From Ylistrum balloti (lineage: Eukaryota): a DNA stretch of 60,601 nt. Made by a program: the position numbers and the translations under genes. The notes beneath the pieces are model-generated. The model was given only the letters and a program-made list of their open reading frames with translations, was not told the origin of the DNA and ran no database searches. Below are positions 27,435 through 56,163 of this stretch, in pieces. The stretch lies in the NCBI RefSeq assembly GCF_031769215.1, contig NW_026782268.1, forward strand, positions 2,108,001-2,168,601. The letters run 5' to 3'. Each line of letters opens with the position of its first letter. The stretch's first letter is position 1.

Positions 27435-29440
27435 CACTGACAGGTTTAAATGTTCTGACCTGATATGACATCCTTTAGACTACCCACAGCACCGACAGTT
27501 TTAAATGTTCTGACCTGATATGACATCCTTTAGACTACCCACAGCACTGACAGTTTTAAATGTTCTGACCTGATATGACATCCTTTAGACTACTACCCAC
27601 AGCACCGACAGTTTTAAATGTTCTGACCTGATATGACATCCTTTAGACTACCCACAGCACTGACAGTTTTAAATGTTCTGACCTGATATGAAATCCTTTA
27701 GACTACCCACAGCACCGACAGTTTTAAATGTTCTGACCTGATATGACATCCTTTAGACTACCCACAGCACCGACAGTTTTAAATGTTCTGACCTGATATG
27801 ACATCCTTTAGACTACTACCCACAGCACCGACAGTTTTAAATGTTCTGACCTGATATGACATCCTTTAGACTACCCACAGCACCGACAGTTTTAAATGTT
27901 CTGACCTGATATGACATCCTTTAGACTACCCACAGCACCGACAGTTTTAAATGTTCTGACCTGATATGACATCCTTTAGACTACCCACAGCACCGACAGT
28001 TTTAAATGTTCTGACCTGATATGACATCCTTTAGACTACTACCCACAGCACCTGATATGACATCCTTTAGACTACTACCCACAGCACCACCGACAGTTTT
28101 AAATGTTCTGACTGATATGACATGATATGACATCCTATGACATCCTTTAGACTACCCACAGCACCGACAGTTTTAAATGTTCTGACCTGATATGACATCC
28201 TTTAGACTACTACCCACAGCACCGACAGTTTTAAATGTTCTGACCTGATATGACATCCTTTAGACTACCCACAGCACTGACAGTTTTAAATGTTCTGACC
28301 TGATATGACATCCTTTAGACTACTACCTACAGCACCGACAGTTTTAAATGTTCTGACCTGATATGACATCCTTTAGACTACTACCCACAGCACCGACAGT
28401 TTTAAATGTTCTGACCTGATATGACATCCTTTAGACTACTACCCACAGCACCGACAGTTTTAAATGTTCTGACCTGATATGACATCCTTTAGACTACTAC
28501 CCACAGCACCGACAGTTTTAAATGTTCTGACCTGATATGACATCCTTTAGACTACTACCCACAGCACCGACAGTTTTAAATGTTCTGACCTGATATGACA
28601 TCCTTTAGACTACCCACAGCACCGACAGTTTTAAATGTTCTGACCTGATATGACATCCTTTAGACTACCCACAGCACCGACAGTTTTAAATGTTCTGACC
28701 TGATATGACATCCTTTAGACTACTACCCACAGCACCGACAGTTTTAAATGTTCTGACCTGATATGACATCCTTTAGACTACTACCCACAGCACCGACAGT
28801 TTTAAATGTTCTGACCTGATATGACATCCTTTAGACTACTACCCACAGCACCGACAGTTTTAAATGTTCTAACCAGATATGACATCCTTTAGACTACTAC
28901 CCACAGCACCGACAGTTTTAAATGTTCTGACCTGATATGACATCCTTTAGACTACTACCCACAGCACCGACAGTTTTAAATGTTCTGACCTGATATGACA
29001 TCCTTTAGACTACTACCCACAGCACCGACAGTTTTAAATGTTCTGACCTGATATGACATCCTTTAGACTACTACCCACAGCACCGACAGTTTTAAATGTT
29101 CTGACCTGATATGAAATCCTTAAGACTACTAACCACAGCACCGACAGTTTTAAATGTTCTGACCTGATATGACATCCTTTAGACTACTACCCACAGCACC
29201 GACAGTTTTAAATGTTCTGACCTGATATGACATCCTTTAGACTACTACCCACAGCACCGACAGTTTTAAATGTTCTGACCTGATATGACATCCTTTAGAC
29301 TACTACCCACAGCACCGACAGTTTTAAATGTTCTGACCTGATATGACATCCTTTAGACTACTACCTACAGCACCGACAGTTTTAAATGTTCTGACCTGAT
29401 ATGACATCCTTTAGACTACTACCTACAGCACTGGCAGTTT
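27435..29440. repeat. Minisatellite, 55/58-bp unit, ~35 copies
   Basis: Unit (tac)tacccacagcaccgacagttttaaatgttctgacctgatatgacatcctttagac, with or without an extra tac. Partial units occur around 28040-28145. Confidence 0.97.
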
Positions 29441-29683
29441 AGCAATCAAATGTTTGTCCTCTCCTACACTTATGTGTTTGCAATGGTCAATTAACATTAC
29501 TAGATAAATAAACCTTTCAAAACAATTGATAACTGAAGACAGCTGAAAAGCATTCATCTTTTTAGACTTGCTAAAAGAGACCTAACCCTGAGTATACCAT
29601 TTTCTTGATCTCGGTCCAGTTATCCAGTTACCACAGCCGTATAACTCCGACTACCAGCAAACGGTGTTTTCAAATCGAACCAT

Positions 29684-30189
29684 AGGGACTTGGCACGAAT
29701 TTCCGACTCATGGGTCCATATATATATTTAATAGTGACAAAGGTTGTAACTGCCGACAACGGAAAACTGAACATGTTGTTTTCAGTTAGTTTTTTTGTTA
29801 TATATTCTAGGGGCCGCAGATCTTAGTAACATATGTATCACATTTAAGAAAAATGCATTATCGTTCAAATGAGTGTTTGATGTACGAGATAGGCCAAGTA
29901 TCGACCTTGTATGTAGAATGTCCACGTAGACATTTCCCTGTCCGGTTGAAACACAATCTCGTCTGTAATGGGTACTTCAATAATAGAAATCGCGAAATAC
30001 CATGCAGATCTCCAAGAGTTACTGCCCTTCGTCTCACTCTGAATTTTCTTTGAAAATTAATATTGTCTTACTAAGATATGTGACCCGTACAAATAATTAA
30101 AATCCTGTTCAGTTTTCCGTTTTCGGGAGATACATCCCATGTCACCATAATAGATATACATGGACCATGAGTCGGAAATTCGAGTCCCT
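29684..30189. repeat. Imperfect inverted repeat: arms 29684-29830 and 30067-30189, spacer ~235 nt (foldback or MITE-like)
   Basis: Reverse complement of the right arm shares agggact, cgaatttccgactcatg, gtccat, gtgaca, aacggaaaactgaaca and atcttagtaa with the left arm, in the same order. Confidence 0.75.
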
Positions 30190-31893
30190 GTGAATCGAAC
30201 GATATCGAGAAGATAATGAAAGATTGGAAGGTGGGCACCTGTCAAGCCTTCGCGACGGATAACGCAAAGATCGTTGTCAACGAGAACCAAACGAAAAGTC
30301 AATAAAATGAAGGTGCAAATGACGAAGAGCTGCACGTGGCTATAGGAAAGAATCGGCGCAACCTTCAGCAGCGGAAAACTTGACGGGTATTTTATGAAAA
30401 GCACGACAGTTAATAAGTCTGACGAGAGGGTATCAAATGTAACAGGACAGGAAATAGTGACTAGCCTAATGCCATTGGTTAAGGTGTTCGACGGCAAGAA
30501 AAACTCAAGGCTGGCGGATTTTTTTTTTTTTTTTTTTTTTTCTTTTTCTTTAATTTATGTTTCTGTTGATATTTGTAAGGGATCTCGTGATTTTATCTCA
30601 TTTACGTTGCGAGTAAACAACATTCCTGACGTAGCCGTGCAAATGTTTGATGTTTAAGATAAACCAGTAACCCGTATTGGCATCACTTTGCTATACTTAT
30701 TGGGGAAGTCCCCAATCGATTTGCGGCCTGTTGAATAAAGTTTCAGATAAATTGCCACTAGCACAGCGAAGCAGGGGAGCTGTTTGGCGGTTGCAAATCT
30801 GGAACTTCCCCTTACGTAAAGTGTCCAAGGAAACATACAGAAAAAAACTATAGGAATTATTACCTGTGAGGGTTTATGTTTAAGTTGTAGTTGTTAAGTC
30901 ATCAATGTATGCATGTGTCTATGATTAATTATCGAAAACAGCAGTTGTTTTTTTTTTCATAGATTTTTTCAAACAAATGTTTAATATTTCATATTGAAAA
31001 CGTCTTTTTTGTTAATTAAAATATGACCAGTACGATTATAGTAGTCTGAACAGGAAACAAGACAAACAACCACAAAAGGAAGAAAACAATTCAAACAAAA
31101 ACAGGGGTTAGGATTATTCTAGTTTTGATATATAGCATACATGGCGTTCAAAGGGAGGTAACTGTTCCATTACTGTAGATAAGGGTGAGATAGCATCATA
31201 ACATCAATTCAAAATGATTTCCATGCATCCGATATATCGATAGAAAGTACCGTCATTAAGGACACTACTATTCCTGGGATGAAATAGAAGTATTGGTTAA
31301 TTTTTATGTTACATTAGGTTTGATATATTTTTATTGCCTTTTGTTTACTTTATTATACCTTGGTTCGCATTCTTATCGGAAAAATGCTGACATGTTGAGA
31401 TGAAAAAAATGAGTTCATAAGAAACATCCATGGAAGTACAAAATAGAAGTATACTTTCCACTGTAATCAAAGAACTTCAGCGAAATTAGTACCACATAAA
31501 ACATGATTAAACACTGGTTCAGCCATAAAACCATAGTATGGCGTTTCGCCTATTTGATAATTGTCGATAGTTGAAAACTGGCCTTGTGTAAAAACGGTCA
31601 CTCCCAGAAGTGTATATATTTTGTCGCGAAAGTCAGAGCCGGCAGTTTAATTGTAAAAGCATTTAAACTGTACATAAACCACGTGTAATGTTACCGAAAA
31701 ACCTACATAGGTTTCCAAACTGGCATTCTATATGACATGATCGATTTCAATATTACAGAAGATTTCATCACGGCATTAAGTTTGCCATGCCTTCACCTGT
31801 TAACTGACTTGAAAGCATTTTCGTTTATTTCGGAATCAGTGATAGAATTTTTTCAAAATAGAGTCTAAACACAATTCTATACAAAGGGACAAA

Positions 31894-31922
31894 ACACACA
31901 CACACGCACACACACACACACT

Positions 31923-31960
<38 letters not shown>
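31894..31960. repeat. (CA)n microsatellite
   Basis: Read directly. Confidence 0.95.
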
Positions 31961-32304
31961 AATAGCACCTATTGATAAACATCCATCTAGAACACGTCAG
32001 TGCATTCTCTGGTGCCAAATTTATCTCTATCACAAGGCAAAACGAAAGAAGATAACTGGTAGATTTGAATGTTGTCGTGATATGAAGAGCGACTGAGGAA
32101 AACATGAATATAGAAAATATCAAAACTTCTATGTTTTGTTAATGTTGACACGAATATTTACGATATAAAACGATATTGTATATATAAATCTCAAAATTGT
32201 ACATTGAAAAACAGAAGTTTAACATTATTAACTACAGGATTGTACAATTAAAAAAAACAAATAAAATACCAGTATCTCAACATAAAAAAAAAAAAAAAAA
32301 AAAA

Positions 32305-32382
32305 ATTCGACCTCACTTAAATCGAATACTCGGATAACTCGAATTTTTCAAACGGTCCTTCGAAATAACGAAGTTCGACTGT
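32305..32382. mobile_element. Possible terminal remnant of a Tc1/pogo-type MITE
   Basis: Ends in cttcgaaataacgaagttcgactg (reverse complement cagtcgaacttcgttatttcgaag), which resembles CAGTCGAAC-type TIRs. No partner TIR found. Confidence 0.3.
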
Positions 32383-33363
32383 TGTACATATACAACGTCA
32401 CATATTTGATACAAGGGACGCTTCCCATAACAATAAATCAAACATATAAAATCGCGTCCTCCTCTGTTAACATGCATCATATCCATTGCTTTACATACAA
32501 TAGAATTTCATTGTCATTATAATTCACATCATATGTGTTATTAGATTTATCAACTTGGTAAGTTTTGTATACGTTCGTTTGAAGAGATACGAAGGATTGT
32601 TCTGTGAACGGATGAATTGTGACGTATCTAATGTTTATATAACAATGCAGAGCCTGTTTTGGTCACAATAACACGTCTTCACCGTGCGACATAGGTAGAG
32701 AACAGAAAGTGAAAACAGAGTTATGCAGAGGTGACTGCACAAAATTGTTGGTGTCAGATATCTTTTTTTAATCATTGTGTTACGAGAAAATACAACACGG
32801 TATGTATTGTTTATCGACTCCACAGAGGCTCTCAGAAATTGTGAGAAACTCGAAAGCATACAAGCGACTTCTGTGAATGTGATTTAAACGCAAGATTATT
32901 GTTTTTGTTTAGAATGTATATTTTTTCTTCTTTCGACTTTTAAATATTGGAAACAGGAGGTAGTATATGAAAATGAATTTTAAAGTGCTGGACGAGATAT
33001 ACAAAGCCAATCACCACTAATTAGTATTCTGTGTACGTGTCTTCACTGTCTACTGTACAAGATATTACGAAACCTGATATGATCACGATTTACTAAAACA
33101 GGCGACACAGGTAGACATTAGATTAGGTGATACACGCGTCAGAATGCCAGACATAACATATTACACTACTTTTTCACAAAACGTGTTAAAAATGTCAGGG
33201 TCTGTTTCAGATATGTAATTTGACTCGTATGAATCTTGATACTCGTATTTAAGAACCTGCTCTGCTCTTTCAACACGTTTCTGCGAAAAGCAAACATGAA
33301 AAAGAACTTATAATCAAATAGAAAAACTACTGATGGAGCCGAATAAAGATATGAAGATTTGAA

Positions 33364-33403
33364 CCCCTACCCCCAACCCCAACCCCCCAACCCCCAACCT
33401 CCC
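33364..33403 (-). other. G-quadruplex-forming G-tract
   Basis: Minus strand reads GGGAGGTTGGGGGTTGGGGGGTTGGGGTTGGGGGTAGGGG, with at least five runs of three or more G. Confidence 0.7.
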
Positions 33404-34294
33404 ACTTCCGGCACCACTACCACAAAAATGATAGTTCAATGTATACATCACTTTGTGTCTATATCGAACACTATTCAGTTGATTGATAATGAGCCCTGTC
33501 GCAGGCTCTTAATGACCTGTTTTGTTTATTTGTTATTTTGAAATTGAAGTTGGTAATTTGCTAATGACGCTGTTTGTTATGAATTTCATTTCTTTGGACT
33601 AAATGAATGGTTGTGGTGCTCAGTTGTTTTTGTTTATTTTCATGTTTTCTAAAGACGCAATAAAAAAAATTGCGAAAATTTGTCATTTAAAATGAAATAA
33701 TATATAAAAATACTTGTATTTAGCTTCATAATTTTGGTGAACAACGATTTCAGCCATGTACACTAGTTTCAACAACTTGTCGCTCTGACTGATATGTACA
33801 CTGTGAAATTTCTGTAAACTATGATGTCTAGTCGTTCATGTTGGGTAACTCCTTGACTACTTTATTGACGTGACATTAAAACTACAGTGATGTTCTCAAT
33901 GATGGATGAAAAATAATTTTCCTCTTAAAACAAAGCTTCAGATCTGTTTGGACTCAACTATTTACACTTGCTCTGCACATCGCAAATATGAACCCACAAC
34001 ACACAGTGTATGATATTTTCAAATAATATGCATTAGTGATCTTGCTTTGATATATGTATAGATATATATTTATAATATATATATATATATATAAACCATA
34101 AAAATGAGGTAATACAAAAATATGTTTCTTTGCAAAAATATCACATATCTGATGGGAAAGAGTGAAATCTCCAGCCAATCAATTTCCTTACAGCTGGAAT
34201 TATCATTATGTCATTAAAGCAAGGAACATTTTTCCATCGGACAAACGGTCTGAAGCTTCTCATCAGATTATATTTGGTATCGTGTTATACTGAC

Positions 34295-35105
34295 TTAATG
34301 CTCAGAATCCTCAACGTCTGTAAGATACACCATGTAGAATATCAAACACATGAGCACCATACTAGCCAAAGTTATCACAAACAGAAATATGTCGAAGGCG
34401 TGCAATAGGGATTTTTTCACCAGAACATCATGGATGTCTATCTCAGTGTCATGAACTTTAGTGTCGAGTGGAAAATTTTCATTTAAATCTTCATTCTTCT
34501 TCTTTCGTTGTTTGCGTTTCAGTAGTCTCTTGTCTTTAATCCTGTTTAAGCGAACTAACCAGGCTGGTAGATCGTCATTGATGCTGAAACGAATGGTAAC
34601 TATTGCCATCAGAACTACCATGGTGCTGTGTAAAACGGACGCTAACAGGAAATAGGTCATTCCTGGCAGCCGTTCGGAGGTTGTTGGAAGAAATGACCCC
34701 ATCACGGACATGTAGACAGACAATGCTAGAAAAAGCGTCATTGAAAATGAGACCCTATCACTCGCTTCGACGGGAATTAGAAACACGAATGATTCTAGAA
34801 TGCACAGCACTGTCACTGGAATAAGCATGTTAATGATAAAATATTTAGATTTCCTTGCCATGTGAATGCTTATGGATATGTACGAACTTGACGAAGATTC
34901 CATTTGGTCATAGTCATCAACTTTATCCGACATATGGATCCCGAGGACATCCCACTCACCATTTTTAAGTAGAAATTCATTATTCACTGCGGATGTTGGA
35001 ACAACAAGTTCCATCTCGTGACTGGTATGGATCATGTTGCACAGGATCAATCTACATATATGGTGATCCTTCGGAAAGGAACGCATATTTGCAAGACACG
35101 ATGAT
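34295..35105 (-). CDS. Gene E exon 3 of 3 (Cys-loop, M1-M4); join complement(37932..38173,35932..36132,34295..35105), 417 aa nAChR-like non-alpha subunit
   Basis: Acceptor ttaccgcactttcag at 35106. Splicing restores GGVLISSCLANMRSFPKDHHIC (C-x13-C). M2 is ASDRVSFSMTLFLALSVYM. Confidence 0.9.
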
Positions 35106-35261
35106 CTGAAAGTGCGGTAAACAACAAATTAGTTCAGAAGTGAGATTTCAAAAGTAGCATTAAACTATATATTAAGTTATAACCAGATAAGTTCAGAAGT
35201 GAGATTTACAGAGTAGCATCAAACTGTTTAAGAAGTTATAACTGACTTCAAAACATCAAGA

Positions 35262-35430
35262 ATATACAAACATGGCAATATAATCATAATTCAAACTCCA
35301 TAAAACTAGGACAAAATATGAGCAAAAGATAGATTTATACGGAAACTCCTGAACAAGCACAAGGAGAATTTTTTTGGAGGAGTAAGCGTCTTCTGCTTCA
35401 TCGACGACACCCGCCATGTAAACCTTGTAA
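35262..35430 (-). mobile_element. PLE 3'-tail fragment in gene E intron 2
   Basis: Reverse complement matches the 37450-37620 tail (catggcgggtgtcgtcgatgaagcagaagacgc; ctagttttatggagtttgaattatgattat). Confidence 0.6.
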
Positions 35431-35931
35431 ATCATAGGGAAACGCATGCTTTTGCCAAAGTATAGTTCAGGTAAGCTATGATTTACCTTTGATAACGTTT
35501 GAAACTGGTGGCAAGACAATTAGTTGCAGTTTTAATAATAATGCTATAGTCATTTTACGATGCCTTCAAAAAGAATGATAACCCCTGGCTTCAGATTTTT
35601 ATTATTGCCTTTGACAGAATGCATGATGACTGTTTTGTCGTTCATGGCCATTCCTTTCATGTATTCTGTATTCTGCTTATCTGGAAACCACCACACCCAC
35701 CCCACATCCTATCCCACTCTCGTTTCATTTTCGCCCTTCTTAAATAACTCGTTTATTATATTATCCCCAGCCGACAAACATAAGGCGAATTCATGTATGG
35801 CGATACAAGGGCGAAAAGAACTGGGACGAAAATATCACGGTATGTATATCAGTTTTGCTATAAAGAATTATATCACTTCAGTTAATTAACACTTAATTAA
35901 CCCTCCATTAACCCCTCAGTAGCAGCCTTAC

Positions 35932-36132
35932 ATCAGTACGCCTCCAGGATTCCAGTAAATATCTCCGTTGTAGAGCACATAGACGTTGGATTCATCTGAT
36001 CCGATGTGCTGCATACCGTCAGCGGCATTGATTAGGACAATGCTTGGAAGCCACAACTGAGAAGCCGGCAGCACCATCCCTTCCACACCACCAAAATCAT
36101 CTGGGTCCCATTGAAGCCGGTAGTCGTGCCAT
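35932..36132 (-). CDS. Gene E exon 2 (201 nt)
   Basis: Acceptor ttctattggcaag, donor AT|gtaagg. Encodes WHDYRLQWDPDDFGG..WLPSIVLIN..YWNPGGVL. Phase 2/2 keeps the frame with exons 1 and 3. Confidence 0.9.
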
Positions 36133-36979
36133 CTTGCCAATAGAAGGGATGTTTTGATAAGTGACATTCAACTTATATATGTGAAGATAATGACGTCATA
36201 CTCATTAAACTAACATGTTACTTTAACAACATGAATATATTATAAATGCATGTTGTCTTACTTAGATCATTCAGAATATTTTTTTCATTTTATTATGTTA
36301 ATCATTTAAGTGTTGTCATTGCGAAATGCAAACTTAATTCAATAACTTCTATGTAATTACAAAAAAAGTGAAATAATTAACAAGGACTTGTTATCCAAAG
36401 AATATATCCAGCAGATATTGAATCTCAGCAACTAATAAGAGGCCTGCATAGTGCTATTGCAATCTATTTTCAGGACTGGAATTGTACTCATAATATCTCA
36501 ATTAAAACAAACCAACTAATGTTGACAACAAATGTTTATATCTTAGTTGCAATGCAAACTGAGATAAATATGAAGCATGTCGCCAAAAAATTGCATATTG
36601 ACAAATCAGATACCTAATCATTGCAATGTTCTTCTAAAGATATATAGATGACTATCGAACATATGTTTTTGTTAGACGAAAACTCGGACGTAAATTTAAC
36701 TTTTTTAATTTGTTAATTTCGTTAAACGTTGGTTGGCAAAAACAAAAAGCAATTTCAAAGCACAAAATCGTGAATAATATAAAAATGCTAGTTTACAATT
36801 ACAATTAAATCTTCAAGGCAACTGAAAAATGAGCATTTTGATAAATTTCCTCAAAGCTCAAGATTTATTTACACTTGGGTCCTACTGATCAAGAAAAGTG
36901 ATTAAAGGTATACTCCAGGAAAGTACCTAGCAGCAGTAGAAAACGTTGGAATTTGTTTGCATTAAAAATGGAATCAATA

Positions 36980-37625
36980 TAGCACACCGAATCAAAGGCA
37001 TATCAGACTCTTCTTCATCAGCTGCTTATCTCGACCTTTTCCTACAACGAAACCAACAGGGACAGCTTTCCATCAAGTTGTTTGATTTCAATTTCCCTAT
37101 TGTCAATTTTCAATTTCTGGATAGCAATATGCCCGCTTTTCTAACCTATGGTATTTGCATGTCACAGATGATTCGATAATCAAGGTCCTGTTCCCATTAT
37201 CACAATTTTTGTGCAAGAAGTCGTCAACTGACTGACATACTCGTAATGCAGGGTTTACAAAAGATGCAGGTTGATAAAAAATATGGGGAAGTTTTATGAT
37301 CGCCATAGTGATCTCAATGAGAAATATTCTATTTCTTTGCGCGACTTGAAGCTGAGCTTATTTATTTCTCGTTAGTTTGCCTGTTGGTTTCGTTGTTGTA
37401 TACCTTGTTCTCATTTGAGAACATGACATTACTTACTTGGACTGACCAAGTTTTACATGGCGGGTGTCGACGATAAAGCAGAAGACATTTATTCTTCTGG
37501 AACACCTTGTCTTATTTTCCTTGTACTTTTTCAGGAGTCTCCGTGTAAATCTTTCTTGTGTTCATATTTTGCTCTAGTTTTATGAAATTTGAATTTGAAT
37601 TATGATTATGTTGCCTTGTTGGTAT
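36980..37625 (+). mobile_element. Penelope-like retroelement fragment in gene E intron 1 (antisense to the gene)
   Basis: SSSAAYLDLFLQ..KLFDFNFPIVNFQFLDSNMP..YGICMSQMIR plus the same 3' tail as the 13790 and 18985 copies. Confidence 0.7.
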
Positions 37626-37931
37626 TTTCTTGATGTCTTTTATAGCATCTACGCCCTCAGAAATGAACTACACAGTAAAACTAATCATCTGCCGAACGTT
37701 ATTTTAAATGCTCCACTTTTAATATCAAAGTACAACTATTGGTAACAAAGTGTATCAAAATGAATTGTTTTTAATAAGTAGGTATTTATTCTATATTGAA
37801 TTATTAATCTCTACATCCGACCAAACCTAAGTTTCATACATACTTAAGGGCAAAATATTGTGCTTTACAGTTAAGAAAATCTGGAAGAACCTTTATATGG
37901 TTTGACTGATAAGTAGGTTATAGATACCTAC

Positions 37932-38173
37932 AGGATAACAAACACCCCTGACAAGGAGACGATTTCGGTGACGACATTGAAGTCGATGACGGAGAAGAGG
38001 TTGTAGGTTACGTTCACTTGTAGCGTGTCATCAATGTAAAACACAGGTCGGAACTCTGGTCTGTAGTCTTCGAATAAGGTATCATTTAATTTCTCCAGGT
38101 CCTTCATCGTTCTCCTAGCCATGACAGTGGCCCCTACAGACAGGATCAGGAGCAGAAATGAAACGGAAGACAT
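37932..38173 (-). CDS. Gene E coding exon 1 (242 nt)
   Basis: ATG 38173, signal peptide MSSVSFLLLILSVGATVMA, helix and RP motif (EDYRPEFRP), donor CT|gtaggt. An acceptor (ttgacag) lies 31 nt upstream of the ATG. Confidence 0.88.
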
Positions 38174-39060
38174 ATCGAATGACGTTCCTTTCAGTTTCAG
38201 TTTCCTGTCAAATAGAGTGAAGAAAACATTTTAAATTAAGAAAAATGTTTTGCTGTTACGTATTAACACATTTTTATGAAATAGAGGACAGGAAATGACC
38301 TAGAACTACAGCTTTATATTTTTTCTTAATTAAAAGTATTTCCATATCTTTGTTTCCAGTATTTTCCCCATTAAAATGCCAAATAGTGATACTGGGATAA
38401 TGAGCAAAAAATATTTCAAAATGTTGATTGACAGTCGCAAATCTCCATAGCAACCAAAATGTAGATTTTGAAAAAAAATATATATATCTGACAATATTCT
38501 GAAACTCAAATATTTTCAGGACTTAATGGATAGAAAATGTGTCTTTGTACTGTTTTCATTTTTTTTAAAGATGCCTTTGTTTTTGTTTTTAGAGATTCTC
38601 ACACTCATTTTTTTTTTCAAAATTCATGAACCAGACCAATGTATTTATTTTTCGGTGCTAGTGTTGTGATCCAGCAAGTCAACTCTGATATACATGTTCG
38701 CGTTCGTGGTGATACTTCATGTGGAATATTGTTGAATTTTGCCTTAACCTTCCAGATTTGTACTCAAGAGAAATACTCTATGACGTCAAATACACCAACA
38801 CAAAATATAGCCGACATGAAAAAATCTACAGAACGTGTAACTATTGGTAACAAAGTATATTTAAACGCGGCAATCTATCAAATTGCATTGGAATTCATTT
38901 TATGGGAGGCGGCAGAAATGTCATTGTGAATGTATGTTTTTCCAACTGTAGACCTGATATGAGAAATGTCGCTAAACCATGTAGATGGGATGAAACACAC
39001 AGAAACATGATCTTTTTAATATACATCAACCATTAGATACTGTATGTTGGAATAATTAAA

Positions 39061-39093
39061 CTGCTTCGTCCTTCTCAGACTTGTCAGTGATGT
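39061..39093 (-). pseudogene. Decayed hammerhead-like sequence of the same family as 44617-44658
   Basis: Minus strand catca-CTGACAA-gtc.tgagaag.gac-GAAG, with core substitutions (G8A, A15.1G) and no stem I partner. Confidence 0.4.
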
Positions 39094-40060
39094 GTAGATT
39101 CCAAACATTTTTGACATCGGAGACGACTGAAGAAAGACATAAATATCAAAATCTAGATGAAAGGTCCATCGGCCCAAACTTAGATAAATCTCCACTATAC
39201 CAGATGTTTTTTCTCCATAAGGTTATATCTACTTGATCAGTCTTATAAAGTCCAAGTAGCTGCTGTCTAATAAGGAAAAGATTGTACTTTCAAAGTACCA
39301 TTCAAGCTTCAATTGCAAAATATACACGTCTATTATGATGAGTCAGAGGGACAGCCTATGGTCATTAAAAAACCATTGAAAACGCATAACTTGTAAATAT
39401 AAGACTCTACCTCTCTGAAAAAAGATGCAGCATATATCTTTATTGATGTCTGTGTGTTAAGGATAGGATGATCGTTGGTTTTGTTTCTTGTAAGTTTTCG
39501 GTTGAAATAGGACATTTCAGTAATTGTGAAATAACAAGTATGTCTACTACCTCCATGTCATCATGTTCTGATCGCGACAGAAATTAGGAGAATCGACTCT
39601 GCTGAAACATGCACGGTAAATGGTCGATCAATTTAATGTTGAATTTCAACATAATGATTCAAGGAATGAAAGGTAATACCTCTTCATAATTAAAACTATG
39701 TTTTTTTGTATACCTTTACGTATGATTGCATGCTACAAACTAACAAGTTATTAATACTCACCCCACTCTTCTCTATCTTCCCTCAAAATGCTAAATGTTT
39801 CCTTTGACAGTATAGGTAGCTAAACATAAAATCAGTCACGTTGACAGCGCTTGAATATGTCACGTGATTCAAATTTTACTACAGATCATGTAACCTTATG
39901 TATTAATTTTAAGGGTCCCGTGAATCGCTGCGTGGTATGTACAAGGTTGTGTGCGCCCTGTAACACAGAAAAATTTGGCTAGGCGGAACGACAAAAACAT
40001 ACAATAATTACGTGAGGGTTAACTGAAGGAGAGAGATCTTATAGATGAGAAATATCAGGG

Positions 40061-43000
40061 ACAACCTTTACAAAACATCGATAAATAACAACCTTTACAT
40101 AACATTGATAAATAACAACATCTACATAACATCGATTAATAACAACATCTACATAACATCGATAAATAACAACATCTACATAACATCGATTAATAACAAC
40201 CTATACACAACATCGATAAATAACAACATCTACACAACTTTTATAAATAACATCTACATAACATCGATAAATAACAACATCTACATAACATCGATAAATA
40301 ACAACATCTACATAACATTGATAAATAACAACCTATACACAACATCGATAAATAACAACATCTACATAACATCGATAAATAACAACATCTACATAACATT
40401 GATAAATAACAACCTATACACAACATCGATAAATAACAACATCTACATAACATTGATAAATAACAACCTATACATAACATCGATAAATAACAACATCTAC
40501 ATAACATTGATAAATAACAACCTATACATAACATCGATAAATAACAACATCTACATAACATCGATAAATAACAACATCTACATAACATCGATAAATAACA
40601 ACATCTACATAACATCGATAAACATCTACATAACATCGATAAATAACAACCTATATAACATCGATAAATAACAACATCTACATAACATCGATAAATAACA
40701 ACCTGTACATAACATCGATAAATAACAACATCTACATAACATCGATAAATAACAACATCTACATAACATCGATAAATAACAACATCTACATAACATCGAT
40801 AAATAACAACCTATACATAACATCGATAAATAACAACATCTACATAACATCGATAAATAACAACCTGTACACAACATCGATAAATAACATCTACATAACA
40901 TCGATAAATAACAACCTATACATAACATCGATAAATAACAACCTATACATAACATTGATAAATAACAACCTGTACACATCGATAAATAACAACATCTACA
41001 TAACATCGATAAATAACAACCTTTACATAACATCGATAAATAACAACATCTACATAACATCGATAAATAACAACCTAACAACATCTACATAACATTGATA
41101 AATAACAACCTGTACATAACATCGATAAATAACAACATCTACATAACATCGATAAATAACAACCTTTACATAACATCGATAAATAACAACATCTACATAA
41201 CATTGATAAATAACAACCTGTACATAACATCGATAAATAACAACCTATACACAACATCGATAAATAACAACATCTACACAACATCGATAAATAACATCTA
41301 CATAACATCGATAAATAACAACATCTACATAACATCGATAAATAACAACCTGTACATAACATCGATAAATAACAACATCTACATAACATCGATAAATAAC
41401 ATCTACATAACATCGATAAATAACAACATCTACATAACATCGATAAATAACAACCTTTACATAACATTGATAAATAACAACCTGTACACAACACGATAAA
41501 TAACAACATCTACATAACATAAAAAACAATACACAACATACCTACATAACATCGATAAATAACAACCTATACATAACATCGATAAATAACAACCTCTACA
41601 TAACATCTATAAATAACAACATCTACATAACATCGATAAATAACAACATCTACATAACATCGATAAATAACAACATCTACATAACATCGATAAATAACAA
41701 CATCTACATAACATCGATAAATAACAACATCTACATAACATCGATAAATAACAACATCTACATAACATCGATAAATAACAACCTGTACATAACATCGATA
41801 AATAACAACATCTACATAACATCGATAAATAACAACCTATACACAACATCGATAAATAACAACCTTAACATAACATCGATAAATAACAACATCTACATAA
41901 CATTGATAAATAACAACCTATACACAACATCGATAAATAACAACCTTAACATAACATCGATAAATAACAACCTTTACATAACATCGATAAATAACAACAT
42001 CTACATAACATCGATAAATAACAACCTTAACATAACATTGATAAATAACAACATATACATAACATCGATAAATAACAACCTTAACATAACATCGATAAAT
42101 AACAACCTTTACATAACATCGATAAATAACAACATCTACATAACATCGATAAATAACAACATCTACATAACATCGATAAATAACAACCTATACACAACAT
42201 CGATAAATAACAAATAACATAACATCGATAAATACTACATAACATCGATACATAACATAACGATAAATAACAACATCTACATAACATCGATAAATAACAA
42301 CATCTACATAACATCGATAAATAACAACATCTACATAACATCGATAAATAACAACATCTACATAACATCGATAAATAACAACATCTACATAACATCGATA
42401 AATAACAACCTTTACATAACATCGATAAATAACAACATCTACATAACATCGATAAATAACAACATCTATATAACAGATAAATAACAACCTTACATAACAT
42501 CGATAAATAACAACCTATACATAACATCGATAAATAACAACATCTACATAACATCGATAAATAACAACATCTACATAACATCGATAAATAACAACCTTAA
42601 CATAACATTGATAAATAACAACATCTACATAACATCGATAAATAACAACCTATACACAACATCGATAAATAACAACATCTACATAACATCGATAAATAAC
42701 AACCTTTACATAACATCGATAAATAACAACCTTTACATAACATCGATAAATAACAACATCTACATAACATCGATAAATAACAACATCTACATAACATCGA
42801 TAAATAACAACATCTACATAACATCGATAAATAACAACATCTACATAACATTGATAAATAACAACATCTACATAACATCGATAAATAACAACCTATACAC
42901 AACATCGAGAAATAACAACATCTACATAACATCGATAAATAACAACATCTGCACAACATCGATAAAAAACAACCTATACACAACATCGATAAATAACAAC

Positions 43001-43366
43001 CTTAACATAACATCGATAAATAACAACCTTTACATAACATCGATAAATAACAACATCTACATAACATCGATAAATAACAACCTATACATAACATCGATAA
43101 ATAACAATCTTAATATAACATCGATAGATAACAACCTTAACATAACATCGATAAATAACAACCTTAACATAACATTGATAAATAACAACATCTACATAAC
43201 ATCGATAAATAACAACCTATACACAACATCGATAAATAACAACCTATACACAACATCGATAAATAACAACCTTAACATAACATTGATAAATAACAACATC
43301 TACATAACATCGATAAATAACAACATCTACATAACATCGATAAATAACAACATCTACATAACATTG
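40061..43366. repeat. Minisatellite, 27-bp unit (24-bp variants), ~120 copies
   Basis: Unit tacataacatcgataaataacaacatc, with variants cct(a/t/g)tac, acacaac and acattgat. Confidence 0.97.
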
Positions 43367-44616
43367 TTGATTTACAACTGCACCACATGACGAAAGGGAT
43401 CATCATATATACCACAATTCAATTATCCGTTACCACTGCTGTATAAACAAATGTTTCTAACACAGGTGGAATAAAATATATAGTAGCATTTTTATTGGCT
43501 GACACGGTGAACATTGAGTGGAAACTCGCTGCACGCAATCTGGAAAATTAAAATATACAATAAGTAATTAATGATTGGTGTGTTAATTGCTGTTTATATG
43601 TATTTTTATCAATTTATACCTTTGAAGATAATTATCCCGTTAGTTGCTTGTTATGGTTTGTAATAGAATTATATTCCAACATATTTCTGAAATTTTCAGT
43701 TTTCCAAAACTGATTATTTACGTTTCATTGCAGGCCATATCACTTAGCCCTTACTGATATCGTTGATTATACATCTGGGTGTAGAATAGGTCCATTCATA
43801 GGCGTAATAGCTCTGAATAGGTCTGTATTTCTTCCAGTTACGTAAGCTATAACTTTAAAAACATAACTCGGGTGAAAGAAAATTCCTTTAATGTATATGC
43901 ATATATTTCCTCATGACATCACATCGAGATATGTAACTCGAAACTTCAATAACCTTTCAACAACTTAACTCTCTCGTGATCCCAATGTCTAATTTCCATT
44001 AATGAAGTTTCGGATACTGGTGAAGACTTACACAAAATAATACCATCACCCTCATAAACATTGTTTCCTATTTTGTCATTGTTCATCATTCACAATGTGT
44101 GCGTTTCAAGGTAACGAAATACCAGAACACAATTAAGGAAAATTTCCTGACAAATTTGCGGTCTTATCTTTGCTGAAAATTGCAAATAACTATATCAAAC
44201 AGTGGCAGGATTATCAAACTTAAAGCATTATATCGTAATGTTTAGGACAGTTTAAGATGTATACCATCAGGTTCTCTTGTGATAAGGCACTATTTACTTT
44301 ATTGTAGGGACATAGTTTTAAGAACATAGTGACATAGTATTAAATCGACATGCTGGTAACACATAAGGTTTAAAATTTCACAGTCCCTGCTTTATCGTCC
44401 GACCGATTCGTATCCAATTTCATTGGACGTGGGTGGTATATTTAATTTATATCTACGGTACGTTCTCGTGATCCATACGAGATTGAAACAACCGAGCATC
44501 GTTCTATGTCTGATCCAGAGATATATACGAGGATGGGACAAAAGATACACAAGTTATTAGCACCTTCTAATACATATTCAAATAAGATACAGCAAAGTCA
44601 AAAATGAATAAACTTG

Positions 44617-44658
44617 CATCAGACACGTGTTTCGTCCTTCTAGGATTCGTCAGTGATG
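44617..44658 (-). ncRNA. Minimal type I hammerhead ribozyme (PLE/retrozyme type), stem II closing pair mutated
   Basis: Minus strand CAUCA-CUGACGA-AUCCU.AGA.AGGAC-GAA-ACACGUGU-C-UGAUG: stem I CAUCA/UGAUG, core CUGAnGA and GAA, palindromic stem III, GUC cleavage triplet. Position 10.1 is A rather than G. Confidence 0.75.
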
Positions 44659-45439
44659 TTAAGGGAACCAAAGTTCAAGTTAGGAAGCCACCGCTGAAAA
44701 TGCATTGCACGAAAGAAATATCAACATTTCGATAGGAAGGTGCAGTGGTCCAACAATTCAGTAAATGTCGATTTGGTAATGATGGTAAAAATGGTTACTG
44801 TGATTTTACACCTTTATCCACATAAACGAATAAATTTGCCTTTAAATTGTTTATCCAAATCGACTGCAATGTGCAGCTATAAAAATGAATATCAAAGGTA
44901 GAAGGAAAGTTTTGCACTGAAAATTGGCAGAGAAATCGTAAAGCAAGAACAAGTTTTAAGTAAATATCTTCTACACCATATACACATCAGTATTTCTTTA
45001 TTGTGATAATATAATTATCGACCTTTGCAGACGTTGATAACTATCACTTTAGTTATGCTGAATATTTAAATACAAACTATTCTGGCCCTATATCACTTTT
45101 CATAATCACAATGATGACTTTGTTCTAGACATTGTTTTGTCTTCACAGAAATTTAGTGATTCATATTCTATTTATGGACGTCTTGTCATCGAATGACATT
45201 TTTAGACAACAATCATCTTTTCAATCAACAAGTTTTACGATGGTCATATGATGTAAGTTACGTTATAATTCATTTCATCATTATAATAATAGCTGTTCCT
45301 ATCAAATAAAAGCACGAACTGAGAAGGCCGCAGTCCAGATCACGAAAGGATGTATCGCTTCGAACGTTTGGTGAGTATCGTTTCTTTAACATGATGGGTC
45401 ATTTTGAGTGAGGGCCTCCATGTAGAAGTTGGTGGCTAT

Positions 45440-45540
45440 CTAATTAAACAATACAGTAGAGGCACTATGCATGTCATCCACAGCAATTATAAAAGTGTTA
45501 AGTGTCTTGACCAAAGACACAACTATGCCAGAGCAGACCG
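45440..45540 (-). mobile_element. Possible SINE remnant
   Basis: aagtgtcttgaccaaagacacaac resembles the widespread SINE body motif gttgtgtccttgggcaagacactt (reverse strand). Confidence 0.3.
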
Positions 45541-47118
45541 TTCTGTTTCTCAGCTTCACGAGAAAAAAACCCGTCACGGGTGAGTTCACCTGAGGCAAGG
45601 TCGTCCAACACTATCCGACACTATCGCTACTCTGGCTTGTAGGGCCTCGTGTCATGCTCCGGTTTGCCTAAATAGAAGGCGACACGAGATATAGAAGTAG
45701 TATTGTGTTACACGGTGTCGCTGGGAGGTTCTGAACCCATTAATCACGCCTGAAGAAAGCTAAAGAGACGACTACCTACTGAAATGCTTATGAGCTAACA
45801 TTTTTGTGCAACATAACTATTGTACCTTTTAGTGTCTATGAAGGTAAGATTGCAGGTAAACAATCGAGAACCCGTGCACAAAGTTATAGTTCATCGTCTC
45901 ATATTGATTTTGTCAATGATAACCGTTTTCAGTGTGTAGTCTGCTTTATCATATACACTCAAATTTACCTCAGCCAAGCGCTGTCACTGATGCTGCAGTA
46001 CTCTCTTAGTAATATTACGTGAATTTTAATAAGACAGCTTGTCGAGAAAACGATGTGAATGTTCTTCATATATTCTTCTGGATTTTTTTTATTTTATTTA
46101 TTTATCTTTTCATGTTTAATAGGCATACATCATGAATATTTCATATTTCCAGACAGTGTCAGATAATATCAATTACTTGTATTTAATTTCGAAGTTCAGG
46201 TATATTCCGACTATAAATGTTTTCGCATGGTAAAATTTATGGCAATGTCGACCTGAGTCGCATTTGGTCGCGGCTCATACAAATATCTTCATAGCACGGT
46301 GTTTTCATTGTACGGTTATAGAACAAAAATGATATCTCATGCTGTCCTAAAAAAATCTTATAGGAAACCGGTTTCAAAGGAAGTTTGCAAGTCAGATGCT
46401 AATTGCTCGTTTTTATAGCGCCATTTTTATCTCATATTTTGTTTTGACATTTAGAACAGATATAATAGTCTGCGGTTTGTGATTCCAAGCAGGTATGTAT
46501 AGTTTATTTATGGAATTAAGTTTACTTAAACACGAACAATAGGATTGGCTGTTGTTAAACTTAAGTGGCTTGACAAAGATAGTATTGCAGGTGTGATCTG
46601 TAAAGGAGAAAACGCTTACGTTTCAAGAACAAATCTGGAGTCTTAATTCAAACTATGAAAAAACAGAAAACGTGTGCAAAATATGAACAAGTTATATTTA
46701 CACGACGACATATAAATAAGTGATAAGTGCAATTTAAATGAAATATTAATCCGGGTATTCAACAAGGGCAGTCATAATAGTTGATTAAACATGTTCTCAG
46801 GGTCGTCAGTATTTCACTGTTTTTCATGTTTAATTGAAAAATGAAATTGAAAATTTTATTGTCTTCATAAATACTTTCTTTTAATGAAAAATGAAAAAAA
46901 AATCATAAGTGATGTTTTATGGTATATCTATGAAATATGCAACACTTCAAGTTAAATAAGTAGCATTGGTTTTTTTGTCTTATAGATAAGTTACATACTC
47001 CTAGCACAATATATTCCGTACAAATACGTCTCAATGTGCCTTTATAAGTTTACAGCAAAACCGGTTGTCTCGAATATATACCGAAAAAAAAATCATAAAC
47101 ATATACAATGCATACTTT

Positions 47119-47455
47119 GCTACAGATATTATACCACTTTGTCTACCACAAAATACTACAGATATCATACCACTTTGTCTACCACAAAATACTACAGATA
47201 TTATACCACTTTGTCTACCACAAAATACTACAGATATTATACCACTTTGTCTGCCACAAAATACTACAGATATTATACCACTTTGTCTACCACAAAGTGC
47301 TACAGATATTATACCACTTTGTCTACCACAAAGTACTACAGATATTATACCACTTTGTCTACCACAAAGTACTACAGATATTATACCACTTTGTCTACCA
47401 CAAAATACTACAGATATTATACCACTTTGTCTACCATAAAATACTACAGATATTA
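47119..47455. repeat. Minisatellite, 36-bp unit, ~9 copies
   Basis: Unit tactacagatattataccactttgtctaccacaaaa. Confidence 0.95.
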
Positions 47456-47916
47456 TTTAATAATATATTTTGTTTACCATAACCATCAAATGTCTAATGT
47501 GGCTAAATATTGTATACAAGAATTCAACATTATATAAAGACAGTTACCATAACGCATTAAAAATATTTCATTTCAATATAAATAGCACATCAAAATCATC
47601 CAATGACGGCATTTCTCATTAATCTGTTTCATGTATAATACGACATAAATCTATTAAAAGGTAGGATATTACATTATTTATTTCAAACGAAAGATATCTT
47701 GTTATTATATTTTTACTACTCTATCACAAAACATTGTTCACATTTTGCTATTATGCGATAAATCTGATGTTTGTAAGGATATTATATTTTCTCTCTGTTC
47801 TATTTTCAGCTTTTCATTTTCTTTAAAGTGTCCTGTCTACCATAACAGCGCGTGAAAACGTTTCAACGTGTACAACCCTTAAACTACATATAACTAACAT
47901 TCGTCCTGTTCTTGGA

Positions 47917-48183
47917 ATTAGCACAACGACCGTTGAAATGAATAGGGGCATGATGATACAACATGCTGGTTTTCCCCAATGTCCTGTTGCAGCAGACTTT
48001 TAGGATGTCTCAATCTGAGGTGAAAATAATGTGTAATCGTTTCCAAACAAACGGAAACATTTCCACAATTCATGTTAGAGGTTTTCCGAAAGCAACAACA
48101 CAGCACCAAGACGTTTGTTAATACAGCACGTTCTAGACTGCCACAGAAACCCATGTCAGGTCCTGTTCTGCAGCTATCGGCCC
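47917..48183 (+). mobile_element. Degenerate Tc1/mariner transposase N-terminal (paired-like HTH) fragment running into the gap
   Basis: Frame starting at 47917 reads ..TFRMSQSEVKIMCNRFQTNGNISTIHVRGFPKATTQHQD.., matching the Tc1 pattern RF.ETGS...R.GRP..TT..QD. In-frame stops follow. Confidence 0.55.
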
Positions 48184-48410
48184 NNNNNNNNNNNNNNNNN
48201 NNNNNNNNNNNNNNNNNNNNNNNNNNNNNNNNNNNNNNNNNNNNNNNNNNNNNNNNNNNNNNNNNNNNNNNNNNNNNNNNNNNNNNNNNNNNNNNNNNNN
48301 NNNNNNNNNNNNNNNNNNNNNNNNNNNNNNNNNNNNNNNNNNNNNNNNNNNNNNNNNNNNNNNNNNNNNNNNNNNNNNNNNNNNNNNNNNNNNNNNNNNN
48401 NNNNNNNNNN
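48184..48410. other. Assembly gap (227 N)
   Basis: Run of N. Confidence 1.
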
Positions 48411-48707
48411 GCATCACACGAGATAGAGATTTAAACTGCAACAACATATTTTAAAATTTTAGCGTGACTTAACATAACATTCAATTTTTCAAAACGTTTC
48501 TGTATAAACCAAATTAAATATTTTTATACAGCATATGCTTAAAAACATAATCTTTCATTACGGCATATACCGTATAGGTAGTGTATTCATTCACGACAAC
48601 TTGAATTGAAAGATCGATATTAATTGCGAGTGTAATAATCGTAAAATGGCAAAAAAATAATAATAACAATAATAAAACTAATTTCTAACTTTATCGAGGT
48701 AAACCTA

Positions 48708-49515
48708 TTATTCCTGATCATGTTCGTGTTGAAGGTAAACCATTGAAAATACAATGCACATCAGTATCATTGTAGACAAGGATATAAAAAACAGAAATTT
48801 GTCAAAAGCACTTAACACAGACATTTTAGTCAATATATCGGAGTCGTTCCCATCAGTAGAATCAGGAACAACCCTGTCCAACGGCATATTTTCATAGTCT
48901 TTGTCAGCAGATTTTTGTGAGGACCTACTTTTCTGTCTGTTTTTCCTATTTACTAGTCGACACAGCCGAATCAACCAAGTTGGCAGTTGCTCATATTCGT
49001 TTAAACGAATGGTTGCTATAGTCATCAAAATTACCATAGTACTGTGTAGTTCCGATGCCAACAAGAAATATGTCATTCCTGCCAATGGTTCCGATGTCGT
49101 TGGTAAATATGACCCCATCACGGACATATATACTGTCAGCGACAAAAAAAGGGTCAAGGAAAACGAAACTCTATCACTAGCCCCAATGGGGATCAAAAAT
49201 ACAAAGGCATCTAATATGCAGAGAACCGCGACCGGAACAAGCATGTTGATGATGAAATAATCCGACTTCCGGATCATGCCAATTGTTATAGAGAGAAACG
49301 AAATCGACGTCAAGTCCTTGTATTTGTCAACCTTGTCCGAAACGTTAGTCCAGATTACGTCCCATTCGCCATTCTTTGTGTAGAAATCCATATTTACAGA
49401 TAATTGGTGAGGGATGAGTCTCATCTCCTCTTTAGTGTATATCATGTTATTTAAGATTAGCATACAAGTTTGATAGTCCCTGGGAAAGTCACGCATGTTT
49501 GTTTTGCACGACGAC
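48708..49515 (-). CDS. Gene F exon 3 of 3; join complement(50583..50824,49983..50183,48708..49515), 416 aa nAChR-like non-alpha subunit, paralogue of E
   Basis: Acceptor atttaattccag at 49516. Splicing gives GGVLVSSCKTNMRDFPRDYQTC. M2 is ASDRVSFSLTLFLSLTVYM. Confidence 0.9.
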
Positions 49516-49982
49516 CTGGAATTAAATGCGACAATGCTACATTATGCCATCTATGTAAAGATAAATCATATGACAAGTACATACATTGACTTTTTTTCAA
49601 ATTTCATTTTCAAAATAATAACTACTATTTGAATATGGAAATGACATTCACTGTTTGAAGAAAGTATTCAAATATTATAGTTATGCGTGAAATCCTCTAA
49701 CAAACATAAACGATCAATAATCAAGGGTAAGTTGTCATTGTTTATATTATCAACTGCATAGTATATAATCATCTCAAAGTTATGCATTATTTAGGATAAG
49801 GATATATGGATTTAGATTACTAGTAATGGTTAGGCTCTTTAGTTAGAAGTTAACAATCTGAAATAAATTGTTAATATCAGAATGATCATAATAAAAACAA
49901 TTTTTTTATTAGACAAATGGGAGTTGAGTTGAGTTACTAATAAGCATTGAATTTTTAATACATAATAGAAAATCAGTATTAC

Positions 49983-50183
49983 ACGAGAACGCCTCCCGGA
50001 ACCCACAACACTCTGCCGCTGTGATCTACGTAGACGTCGAAGTCTTCAGATCCCACCTGCTGTATATTGTCCATACCCGTCAGAAGTACGATCTTGGGGT
50101 ACCATACCTGGGAAGCCGGTAACACAATACCATCCACGCCCCCAAAATCTTCCGGATCCCACGCAAGTCGGTAGTCTGTCCAA
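49983..50183 (-). CDS. Gene F exon 2 (201 nt)
   Basis: Acceptor ttcattgaccag, donor GT|gtaata. Encodes WTDYRLAWDPEDFGG..WYPKIVLL..LWVPGGVL. Same length and phase as gene E exon 2. Confidence 0.9.
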
Positions 50184-50582
50184 CTGGTCAATGAATTACA
50201 AAATGTGCATTTAGCTCAATCATTAATCCACTGGTTAAAGTGTATGAAATAAAATATCAGAAAGTATTTCCTACCCTACTTTATAAAAAGTTGCTACACT
50301 AAATGTTTATATCATACCAACAACAAAAATGTTTTCCAAAACATGACAACAGTAATATTATCCATAGAATATTCTTAAAAAATATAGATTTTACGTGATA
50401 ACATTTAACCAGTTAACTGTCTCTTGCATTCACATGCTCAGCGGCATTTGTTAAGTTTCTTCTACACTTGGTTCTTGTCTGTTTGAAGCCGCCTCAGAAT
50501 TTTGTCTGAAACATTTGTCAACCCCATCCTTACAACGACTTATAAGCATGTAGTAAGTTATTAGAAGCAAAGCCAAACAAAC

Positions 50583-50824
50583 CTCATCTGCAAAGCTCCA
50601 GACAATGAGATTGTCTCAGTAATCACGCTGAAGCTAATGAAAGAAAACAGGTTATACAGAATGTGGACGTCTACTGTGTGGTTTAGGTAAAACGCTGGTC
50701 GGAACTCGGGTGTGTAATCTCGGAACAAAGTGTCATTCAGTCTTTGCATGTCCGCCATTGTTCCCATGGAGGACCCATAAACGACCTCTAGCGACAGGAA
50801 TATGATCAGCGTCTTCAGAGACAT
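50583..50824 (-). CDS. Gene F coding exon 1 (242 nt from ATG 50824; alternative in-frame ATG at 50854)
   Basis: Signal peptide MSLKTLIIFLSLEVVYG, RDYTPEFRP, donor AG|gtttgt. Splicing gives GALQMSWTD. Confidence 0.87.
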
Positions 50825-56094: not shown

Positions 56095-56163
56095 ATTGCG
56101 AATACGTTAGTAAATGTATCAAGAACTGGTGTATGTAAGAAATACGAACTGTCATTTGTGAAA

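Follow-up and report, generated by a model that had tools for sequence, protein, structure and literature searches.

Introduction

Bivalve genomes hold one to two hundred genes for proteins resembling the subunits of nicotinic acetylcholine receptors (nAChRs), and their functions are almost wholly unknown. This expansion has been described as intron-poor tandem arrays with low expression of some copies, in an account that does not discuss pocket residues (Jiao et al. 2019, PMC6896357). A study of the annelid receptor Alpo4 sorted 649 lophotrochozoan sequences, including those of Mizuhopecten and Pecten, into families and noted that chemotactile receptors are without the signature motifs (PMC10338036), and the MolluscaGenes preprint describes divergent clades in which acetylcholine-coordinating positions are substituted, as well as a clade similar to the chemotactile receptors (CRs) that reaches bivalves (PMC13174522). 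There is precedent for nAChR-derived receptors that are non-cholinergic, known in the case of the octopus CRs and proposed in that of Alpo4 (PMC11526382, 10.1101/2025.03.03.641191, PMC10338036). Here, we describe a stretch of 60,601 nucleotides from the scallop Ylistrum balloti (contig NW_026782268.1 of assembly GCF_031769215.1, positions 2,108,001 to 2,168,601, forward strand; hereafter the window), which contains six Cys-loop receptor genes, A to F. Our subject is the pair E and F, in which the tryptophan of binding-site loop B is replaced by a methionine. A literature search found no paper on the clade to which E and F belong or on its fixed Trp-to-Met change.

Among the many bivalve genes of this kind, E and F make a clean and tractable case: they are adjacent and strongly conserved, the central acetylcholine-contact residue has been replaced for good, and the clade is confined to the scallop lineage.

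Results

Directly after the Cys-loop, gene E reads C165-RLILCNMIH and gene F reads C165-MLILNNMIY. The same block is YPWMY, TPWMH, TPWMY, and APWLY in A, B, C, and D, respectively, so that the tryptophan is kept in all four. In HMMER alignments the block pairs without gaps with human alpha7 and Torpedo alpha1, and Met172 stands opposite the W of 'CKLKFGSWSY' in the former and opposite W149 of 'CTMKLGIWTY' in the latter, which places it at the Trp149 position. A previous reading of the window, made by a model from the letters alone (the sequence-only reading), had claimed that the loop B tryptophan (TrpB) is gone from E and F and kept in A to D, and the alignments bear this out. E and F therefore cannot make the classical cation-pi contact of TrpB.

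The replacement is fixed in the orthologues of related species. Methionine occupies the loop B position in 9 of 9 clade members, within a near-invariant L-I-L-N-N-M-I motif; these are both paralogues in each of four scallop genera (Ylistrum, Mizuhopecten, Pecten, and Argopecten) and one further protein (P0191) from a 1.4-kb contig, L001 (Logan, SRR26445937). Orthologues of both E and F are present in Mizuhopecten yessoensis and Pecten maximus, while in Argopecten irradians the E orthologue is full-length and the F-like entry (P0008), which stands outside the tree described below, is truncated. The DNA run of a second individual (X1, approximately 9x on gene E) has the identical Met codon in an unbroken open reading frame (ORF), and differs from E at 13 coding positions, 8 of them synonymous and 5 leading to mostly conservative replacements (V68I, M121I, D138H, I239V, and H417N). 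Chance or an assembly error as the source of the methionine is excluded by this second individual, together with the invariance in nine members despite saturated synonymous divergence.

Two of the sequences in this comparison merit a remark. Contig L001 (positions 1 to 1407) encodes a 409-residue clade member with the block 'CTLVITSMIY', its frame is unbroken across both intron positions, and its GC content is above that of the scallop locus. The contig probably represents the transcript of a relative and, if so, provides the sole hint of expression of any member of the clade. The model of the Argopecten E orthologue (P0007, 557 amino acids; contig L005, 10001 to 26510) has three extra 5' exons across 11 kb, adding approximately 140 N-terminal residues, and this extension probably stems either from fusion with an upstream gene during annotation or from a mis-called start.

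Genes A to D are single ORFs, and E and F have three exons each. The four introns of E and F are all GT-AG and phase 2, and they interrupt the same two codons in both genes. Both introns have the same position and phase in the E orthologues of Pecten, Mizuhopecten, and Argopecten and in the F orthologue of Pecten, and in all of these exon 2 is 201 nt long. The arrangement of the genes is conserved as well: in Pecten, F directly precedes E and both are on one strand, as in the window, the F-to-E order is kept in Pecten, Mizuhopecten, and Argopecten, and in Mizuhopecten the E orthologue is followed just downstream by that of D (P0061). Spliced E is 100% identical to a 417-residue Y. balloti database protein (P0001), and F corresponds to a database entry of 426 residues (P0004), the model of which begins at an upstream ATG (Table 1). 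A Pfam search with E gave 61 bits for Neur_chan_LBD (PF02931) in exon 2, and 31.1 bits for this same domain (cut-off 26) and 37.3 bits for Neur_chan_memb (PF02932; cut-off 28.1) in exon 3. For F, the ligand-binding domain is above the cut-off and the membrane domain, at 22.6 bits on the exon-3 piece, is under the cut-off of 28.1. The two proteins are 56% identical, and both have the C-x13-C Cys-loop (C151 and C165) that is invariant in 102 relatives. E and F are intact genes for Cys-loop nAChR-like subunits.

An assembly gap lies between F and E, outside all exons of both genes. It starts 297 nt downstream of the F stop codon, i.e., in the F 3' flank, with all F exons to its right and all E exons far to its left. 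The alignment of F with its Pecten orthologue runs from end to end; since F aligns with its orthologues through the C-terminus, no F coding sequence is concealed by the gap, which leaves the E-F intergenic distance alone uncertain.

Nei-Gojobori ratios of nonsynonymous to synonymous divergence (dN/dS) are 0.08 to 0.24 over all pairs, 0.06 to 0.18 for the extracellular domain, and 0.04 to 0.12 for the membrane domain, all of them rough values given the saturated dS. Purifying selection acts on both of these domains in E and F, which are working genes, not decaying copies.

To place E and F in the family, 1.84 billion cluster representatives were searched exhaustively with HMMER, and no protein was found between 47% and 35% identity to E; the closest sequences outside the E/F clade, at 31% to 35% identity, comprise further paralogues from scallops and one protein from an oyster. 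A maximum-likelihood tree of 80 sequences recovers the E/F clade with 100% support on a long stem of 0.92 changes per site, and the clade nests deep within a mollusc-specific radiation, among bivalve paralogues. Its sister group consists of gene D and scallop paralogues, every one of which has the tryptophan, and since the sister group keeps this residue, the Trp-to-Met change falls on the E/F stem, before the duplication that gave rise to E and F. Genes A, B, and C are in a clade separate from D, E, and F.

How unusual is the loss of TrpB? In a census of 153 single-domain relatives, for which the Cys-loop anchored the alignment, the loop B column holds a residue other than tryptophan in 52 (Met in 13, Tyr in 10, Leu in 8, Phe in 7, Val in 5, and others). 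Methionine is also found in the gastropods Biomphalaria, Elysia, and Plakobranchus, and leucine in a protein of a freshwater mussel and in the delta subunit of a vertebrate, Vipera (P0011). Parsimony on the tree requires at least 15 changes between Trp and non-Trp and at least 2 origins of Met. Loss of TrpB is thus common in this part of the family, with no fewer than 15 replacements, and its absence by itself is therefore weak evidence of anything special.

We mapped the rest of the binding pocket by aligning a profile of the clade to Torpedo alpha1, with a cross-check in a 102-sequence alignment. At the loop A position Tyr93 (TyrA), E has Ile115 and F has Leu115, and the clade as a whole Ile or Leu. 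The loop D tryptophan (TrpD; Trp55 or Trp57), which the delta and alpha7-like references carry, is replaced by Val77 in E and Ala77 in F. Trp149 corresponds to Met172 in E, F, and all nine members, and the vicinal pair Cys192-Cys193 of loop C is absent, with Gln-Met at its place in E and Asp-Leu in F. By contrast, gap-free profile alignment to Torpedo alpha1 puts an invariant Tyr213 at Tyr190, and a Phe, which is Tyr in Ylistrum E, at Tyr198. By position, 2 of the 5 aromatics of the box are present in E and F, both in loop C, and the other 3 are gone together with the Cys pair. The statement of the sequence-only reading that E and F are without any canonical box aromatic thus holds for TyrA, TrpB, and TrpD, and fails for loop C. 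In genes A to D, the pattern is the reverse: TrpB is present, both loop C tyrosines are missing, and loop C is 5 to 7 residues shorter. A graded loss of the acetylcholine site over the cluster, as the sequence-only reading had proposed, is not supported by this mosaic of residues or by the tree, in which A to C belong to a clade other than that of D, E, and F; the six genes are not one lineage.

Loop C also differs from its first description as longer, acidic, and Ser-rich. In E/F, the segment from beta9 through loop C to beta10 has 29 to 32 residues, compared to 31 to 32 in canonical subunits; the sister group has 27, and most of the expansion has 25. Loop C of E/F is therefore of approximately canonical length and long only in comparison with truncated relatives. 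The acidic, Ser-rich tip is confined to Ylistrum E; in F and the E orthologues, this tip, which shows the lowest conservation of all extracellular segments, is neutral to basic. N-N-M, Tyr213, and Phe/Tyr221-223 are among the best-conserved residues of this domain. Since E and F nest among short-loop relatives, their long loop C may have been retained or secondarily re-elongated; the match of its Tyr and Phe to Tyr190 and Tyr198 is positional, and homology by descent is uncertain. On loop E, the E lineage has Tyr at the columns of alpha7 Leu109 and Gln117, and the loop E aromatics of E itself are Tyr132, Tyr140, and Trp141.

The channel core is of the cation type, as far as can be judged from M2, which is free of a PAR motif and presents the cation-channel pattern of Asp at -1', Arg at 0', Thr at 6', and Leu at 9' (D264, R265, and L274 in E; D262 and L272 in F). 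The tip of the Cys-loop is FPKD in E (Lys160) and FPRD in F (Arg160), in place of the near-universal FPFD. The second Phe of this motif is kept in 73 of 102 relatives, and the sister clade has V, S, T, or M instead. An AlphaFold2 model of E, based on the 102-sequence alignment, has a predicted local distance difference test score (pLDDT) of 91.8 and a predicted template-modelling score (pTM) of 0.81, and shows the full beta-sandwich and four transmembrane helices; a run on a six-sequence alignment (pLDDT 51) was discarded, and E is the one protein that was modelled. The model matches muscle and neuronal nAChR subunits with a Foldseek TM-score of approximately 0.8 and a VIA Z of 30 to 34 over approximately 370 residues.

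Table 1. Positions of the receptor genes, of selected binding-site residues, and of the assembly gap in the window.
Feature	Position	Strand	Remarks
Gene A	4127-5542	+	single ORF; clade other than D-E-F; loop B Trp present, loop C truncated
Gene B	11472-12923	-	single ORF; clade other than D-E-F; loop B Trp present, loop C truncated
Gene C	16676-18127	-	single ORF; clade other than D-E-F; loop B Trp present, loop C truncated
Gene D	24969-26219	-	single ORF, 416 amino acids, APWLY; closest relative of E/F in the window; loop B Trp present
Gene E, whole	34295-38173	-	three exons, 417 amino acids
Gene E, exon 1	37932..38173	-	ATG at 38173; signal peptide, N-terminal helix, beta1-beta2; GT donor after 37932
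E Val77, loop D site	37943-37945	-	exon 1
Gene E, exon 2	35932..36132	-	201 nt; loop A site and loop E; Neur_chan_LBD 1.5e-16 (Pfam)
E Ile115, loop A site	36030-36032	-	exon 2
Gene E, exon 3	34295..35105	-	Cys-loop C151/C165, loops B and C, M1-M4; stop codon 34295-34297
E Met172 codon (ATG)	35033-35035	-	loop B Trp149 position; aligned to alpha7 W and Torpedo alpha1 W149
E loop C segment	34880..34912	-	Tyr213 at 34910-34912 (~Tyr190) to Tyr223 at 34880-34882 (~Tyr198); without Cys pair
Gene F, whole	48708-50824	-	three exons, 416 amino acids
Gene F, exon 1	50583..50824	-	ATG at 50824; in-frame upstream ATG at 50854; loop D site Ala77
Gene F, exon 2	49983..50183	-	201 nt; loop A site Leu115
Gene F, exon 3	48708..49515	-	Cys-loop, loops B and C, M1-M4; stop codon 48708-48710
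F Met172 codon	49443-49445	-	loop B Trp149 position
Assembly gap	48184..48410	.	227 N; between F and E, outside all E and F exons

Between E and F lies a 3.3-kb satellite (40061 to 43364) with a 27-nt unit in approximately 85 to 120 copies at 89% to 90% matches, a GC content of 0.27, a GC skew of -0.65, and long spurious ORFs on both strands; between this satellite and the assembly gap, at 47120 to 47456, there is a tandem array of 9.4 copies of a 36-nt unit (97% matches). Intron 2 (35288 to 35423) and intron 1 (36920 to 37735) of E contain interspersed repeats of very high copy number, with a summed X1 depth of approximately 29,000 to 35,000 compared to approximately 9 for unique sequence. 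The intron-1 repeat has the motif 'SSAAYLDLFLQ.NQ.GQ' in common with the ORFs at 13814 to 14161 and 19007 to 19345, which adjoin genes B and C. These two genes are near-identical (branch lengths of 0.011 and 0.025) and lie in a duplicated unit of approximately 5.2 kb that also repeats the flanking ORFs at 9852 to 10052 and 15080 to 15280; they are a very recent tandem duplication. Towards the end of the window (56158 to 60149, plus strand), in a region of higher GC content (0.42 to 0.44), ORFs of 941 and 397 amino acids have gag-like zinc knuckle, protease, reverse transcriptase, RNase H, and integrase-like motifs by eye, and look like a long terminal repeat (LTR) retrotransposon.

Discussion

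We tentatively favour, while stopping short of calling it probable, the reading that E and F form an orphan ligand-gated cation channel, possibly as an E/F heteromer, with a non-cholinergic pocket. E and F are functional subunits under selective constraint, and their clade, small and of the scallop lineage, belongs to the expanded molluscan nAChR-like family. The orthosteric principal face was remodelled on the stem of this clade, with Trp exchanged for Met in L-I-L-N-N-M-I and with TyrA, TrpD, and the Cys pair absent, and the remodelled face carries a loop C of canonical length that has aromatics at the positions of Tyr190 and Tyr198. E and F, perhaps together, could then offer a Met-lined putative pocket to something other than acetylcholine. 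From the residues at these positions, we infer that they do not bind acetylcholine in the classical manner. Should the pair indeed be gated by a non-cholinergic cue, it would represent a second independent conversion of a neurotransmitter receptor to a sensor within molluscs.

Several points weigh against this interpretation. A missing TrpB is equally expected of a non-binding partner subunit, and vertebrate delta has Leu there; an amine ligand could still be supported by the retained loop C aromatics; the altered FPFD motif is at the interface that couples the extracellular to the transmembrane domain, so that gating or coupling may be atypical; dS is saturated (1.3 to 3.6) and the dN/dS values are therefore rough, though far under 1; and a search for RNA runs containing the Ylistrum locus matched none, its single match being the approximately 9x DNA run X1. 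The first of these leads to a somewhat unlikely alternative, namely that the pair has an accessory or structural role comparable to that of vertebrate beta1, delta, or alpha5/beta3. E and F would then assemble with Trp-bearing partners, possibly D or others, into a cholinergic or other heteromer and have no agonist face of their own. The Leu in the loop B column of the delta subunit, the presence of delta and beta chains among the top sequence and fold matches, the missing Cys pair, and the syntenic proximity of E, F, and D in several scallops all suit such a role, and strong purifying selection suits an obligate partner as well as a ligand-binding subunit. However, with Val or Ala in place of TrpD there is no classical complementary face either, and the high conservation of N-N-M, Tyr213, and Phe/Tyr221-223 is not needed for a purely structural face. 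The delta subunit also shows that the conclusion of the sequence-only reading, that any ligand is probably not a cationic amine, does not follow, since delta lacks TrpB too, being a non-alpha partner subunit.

Other Cys-loop receptors place their cation-pi contact on aromatics of loop A or loop C. E and F might in this way bind a cationic amine (acetylcholine, choline, or another), the contact having moved to aromatics of loop C (Tyr213 and Phe/Tyr221-223) or of loop E (Tyr132, Tyr140, and Trp141 in E). We consider this doubtful: the clade-invariant aromatics at Tyr190 and Tyr198 and the loop E tyrosines at the Leu109 and Gln117 columns speak for it, but E and F have lost 3 of the 5 box aromatics along with the Cys pair, no part of the extracellular domain is less conserved than the loop C tip, and the long loop C could be secondarily re-elongated instead of a retained ancestral site. 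That the genes are decaying or functionless retro-derived copies, with the Trp-to-Met change a product of drift under relaxed constraint, is very improbable. Intron-poor molluscan nAChR genes are more often without, or with low, expression than intron-rich ones (Jiao et al. 2019, PMC6896357), which together with the empty search of RNA runs fits such a fate; the frames, however, are intact in four genera and in the second individual, neither the Met nor its motif varies, introns and synteny are kept, and dN/dS is far under 1. The pseudogene interpretation was rejected on the grounds of frame, synteny, and dN/dS. To return to a non-cholinergic channel, an extended version, which we regard as a long shot, would make E and F an independently arisen scallop counterpart of the octopus CRs: an ionotropic chemoreceptor pair that acts in mantle tentacles and not at synapses, and whose fixed, Met-lined, and partly aromatic pocket would detect an ecologically constant non-amine cue. 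Such a cue might be, as pure speculation, a steroid-like compound from a predator.

How does the E/F clade compare with the systems already described? The window fits the molluscan expansion in being a bivalve tandem array of highly divergent sequences, comprising the intronless genes A to D and the two-intron genes E and F, with substituted acetylcholine-coordinating positions and a cation-type M2; it departs from it in the near-canonical length of loop C in E and F, most of the expansion being 5 to 7 residues shorter. With the cephalopod CRs (CRT1, PDB 9e6b and 8eis), which are pentameric channels, E and F share a derivation from nAChRs, a lack of the acetylcholine-binding signature, and a short intracellular loop. 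Exon 3 of E aligns to CRT1 over nearly its full length, M4 included. Nevertheless, E has no special affinity to CRT1, which scores 64 bits in a PDB search compared to 74 bits for alpha7; the 80-sequence tree was built without cephalopod CR sequences. The CRs are reported to be intronless (PMC13174522), unlike E and F with their two conserved phase-2 introns, and diversifying selection has been reported for the CR pocket (PMC11526382), while the extracellular domain of E and F is under purifying selection.

Vertebrate delta and beta1 resemble E and F in the absence of TrpB (Leu in Vipera delta) and of the Cys pair, and they rank among the top matches by fold and by sequence. They differ in that delta keeps TrpD for the complementary face, which E and F have lost, and they are not orthologous, given the place of E and F deep inside a mollusc-specific radiation. 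The lophotrochozoan orphan Alpo4, an nAChR-like receptor from an annelid (PMC10338036), likewise lacks the Cys pair; it does not respond to acetylcholine or 5-hydroxytryptamine, and its aromatic cage is whole, including the loop B Trp159, whereas E and F have lost 3 of the 5 cage residues. The kind of receptor is thus already known, and the E/F clade is a well-defined new member of it and a fairly ordinary case of an orphan receptor.

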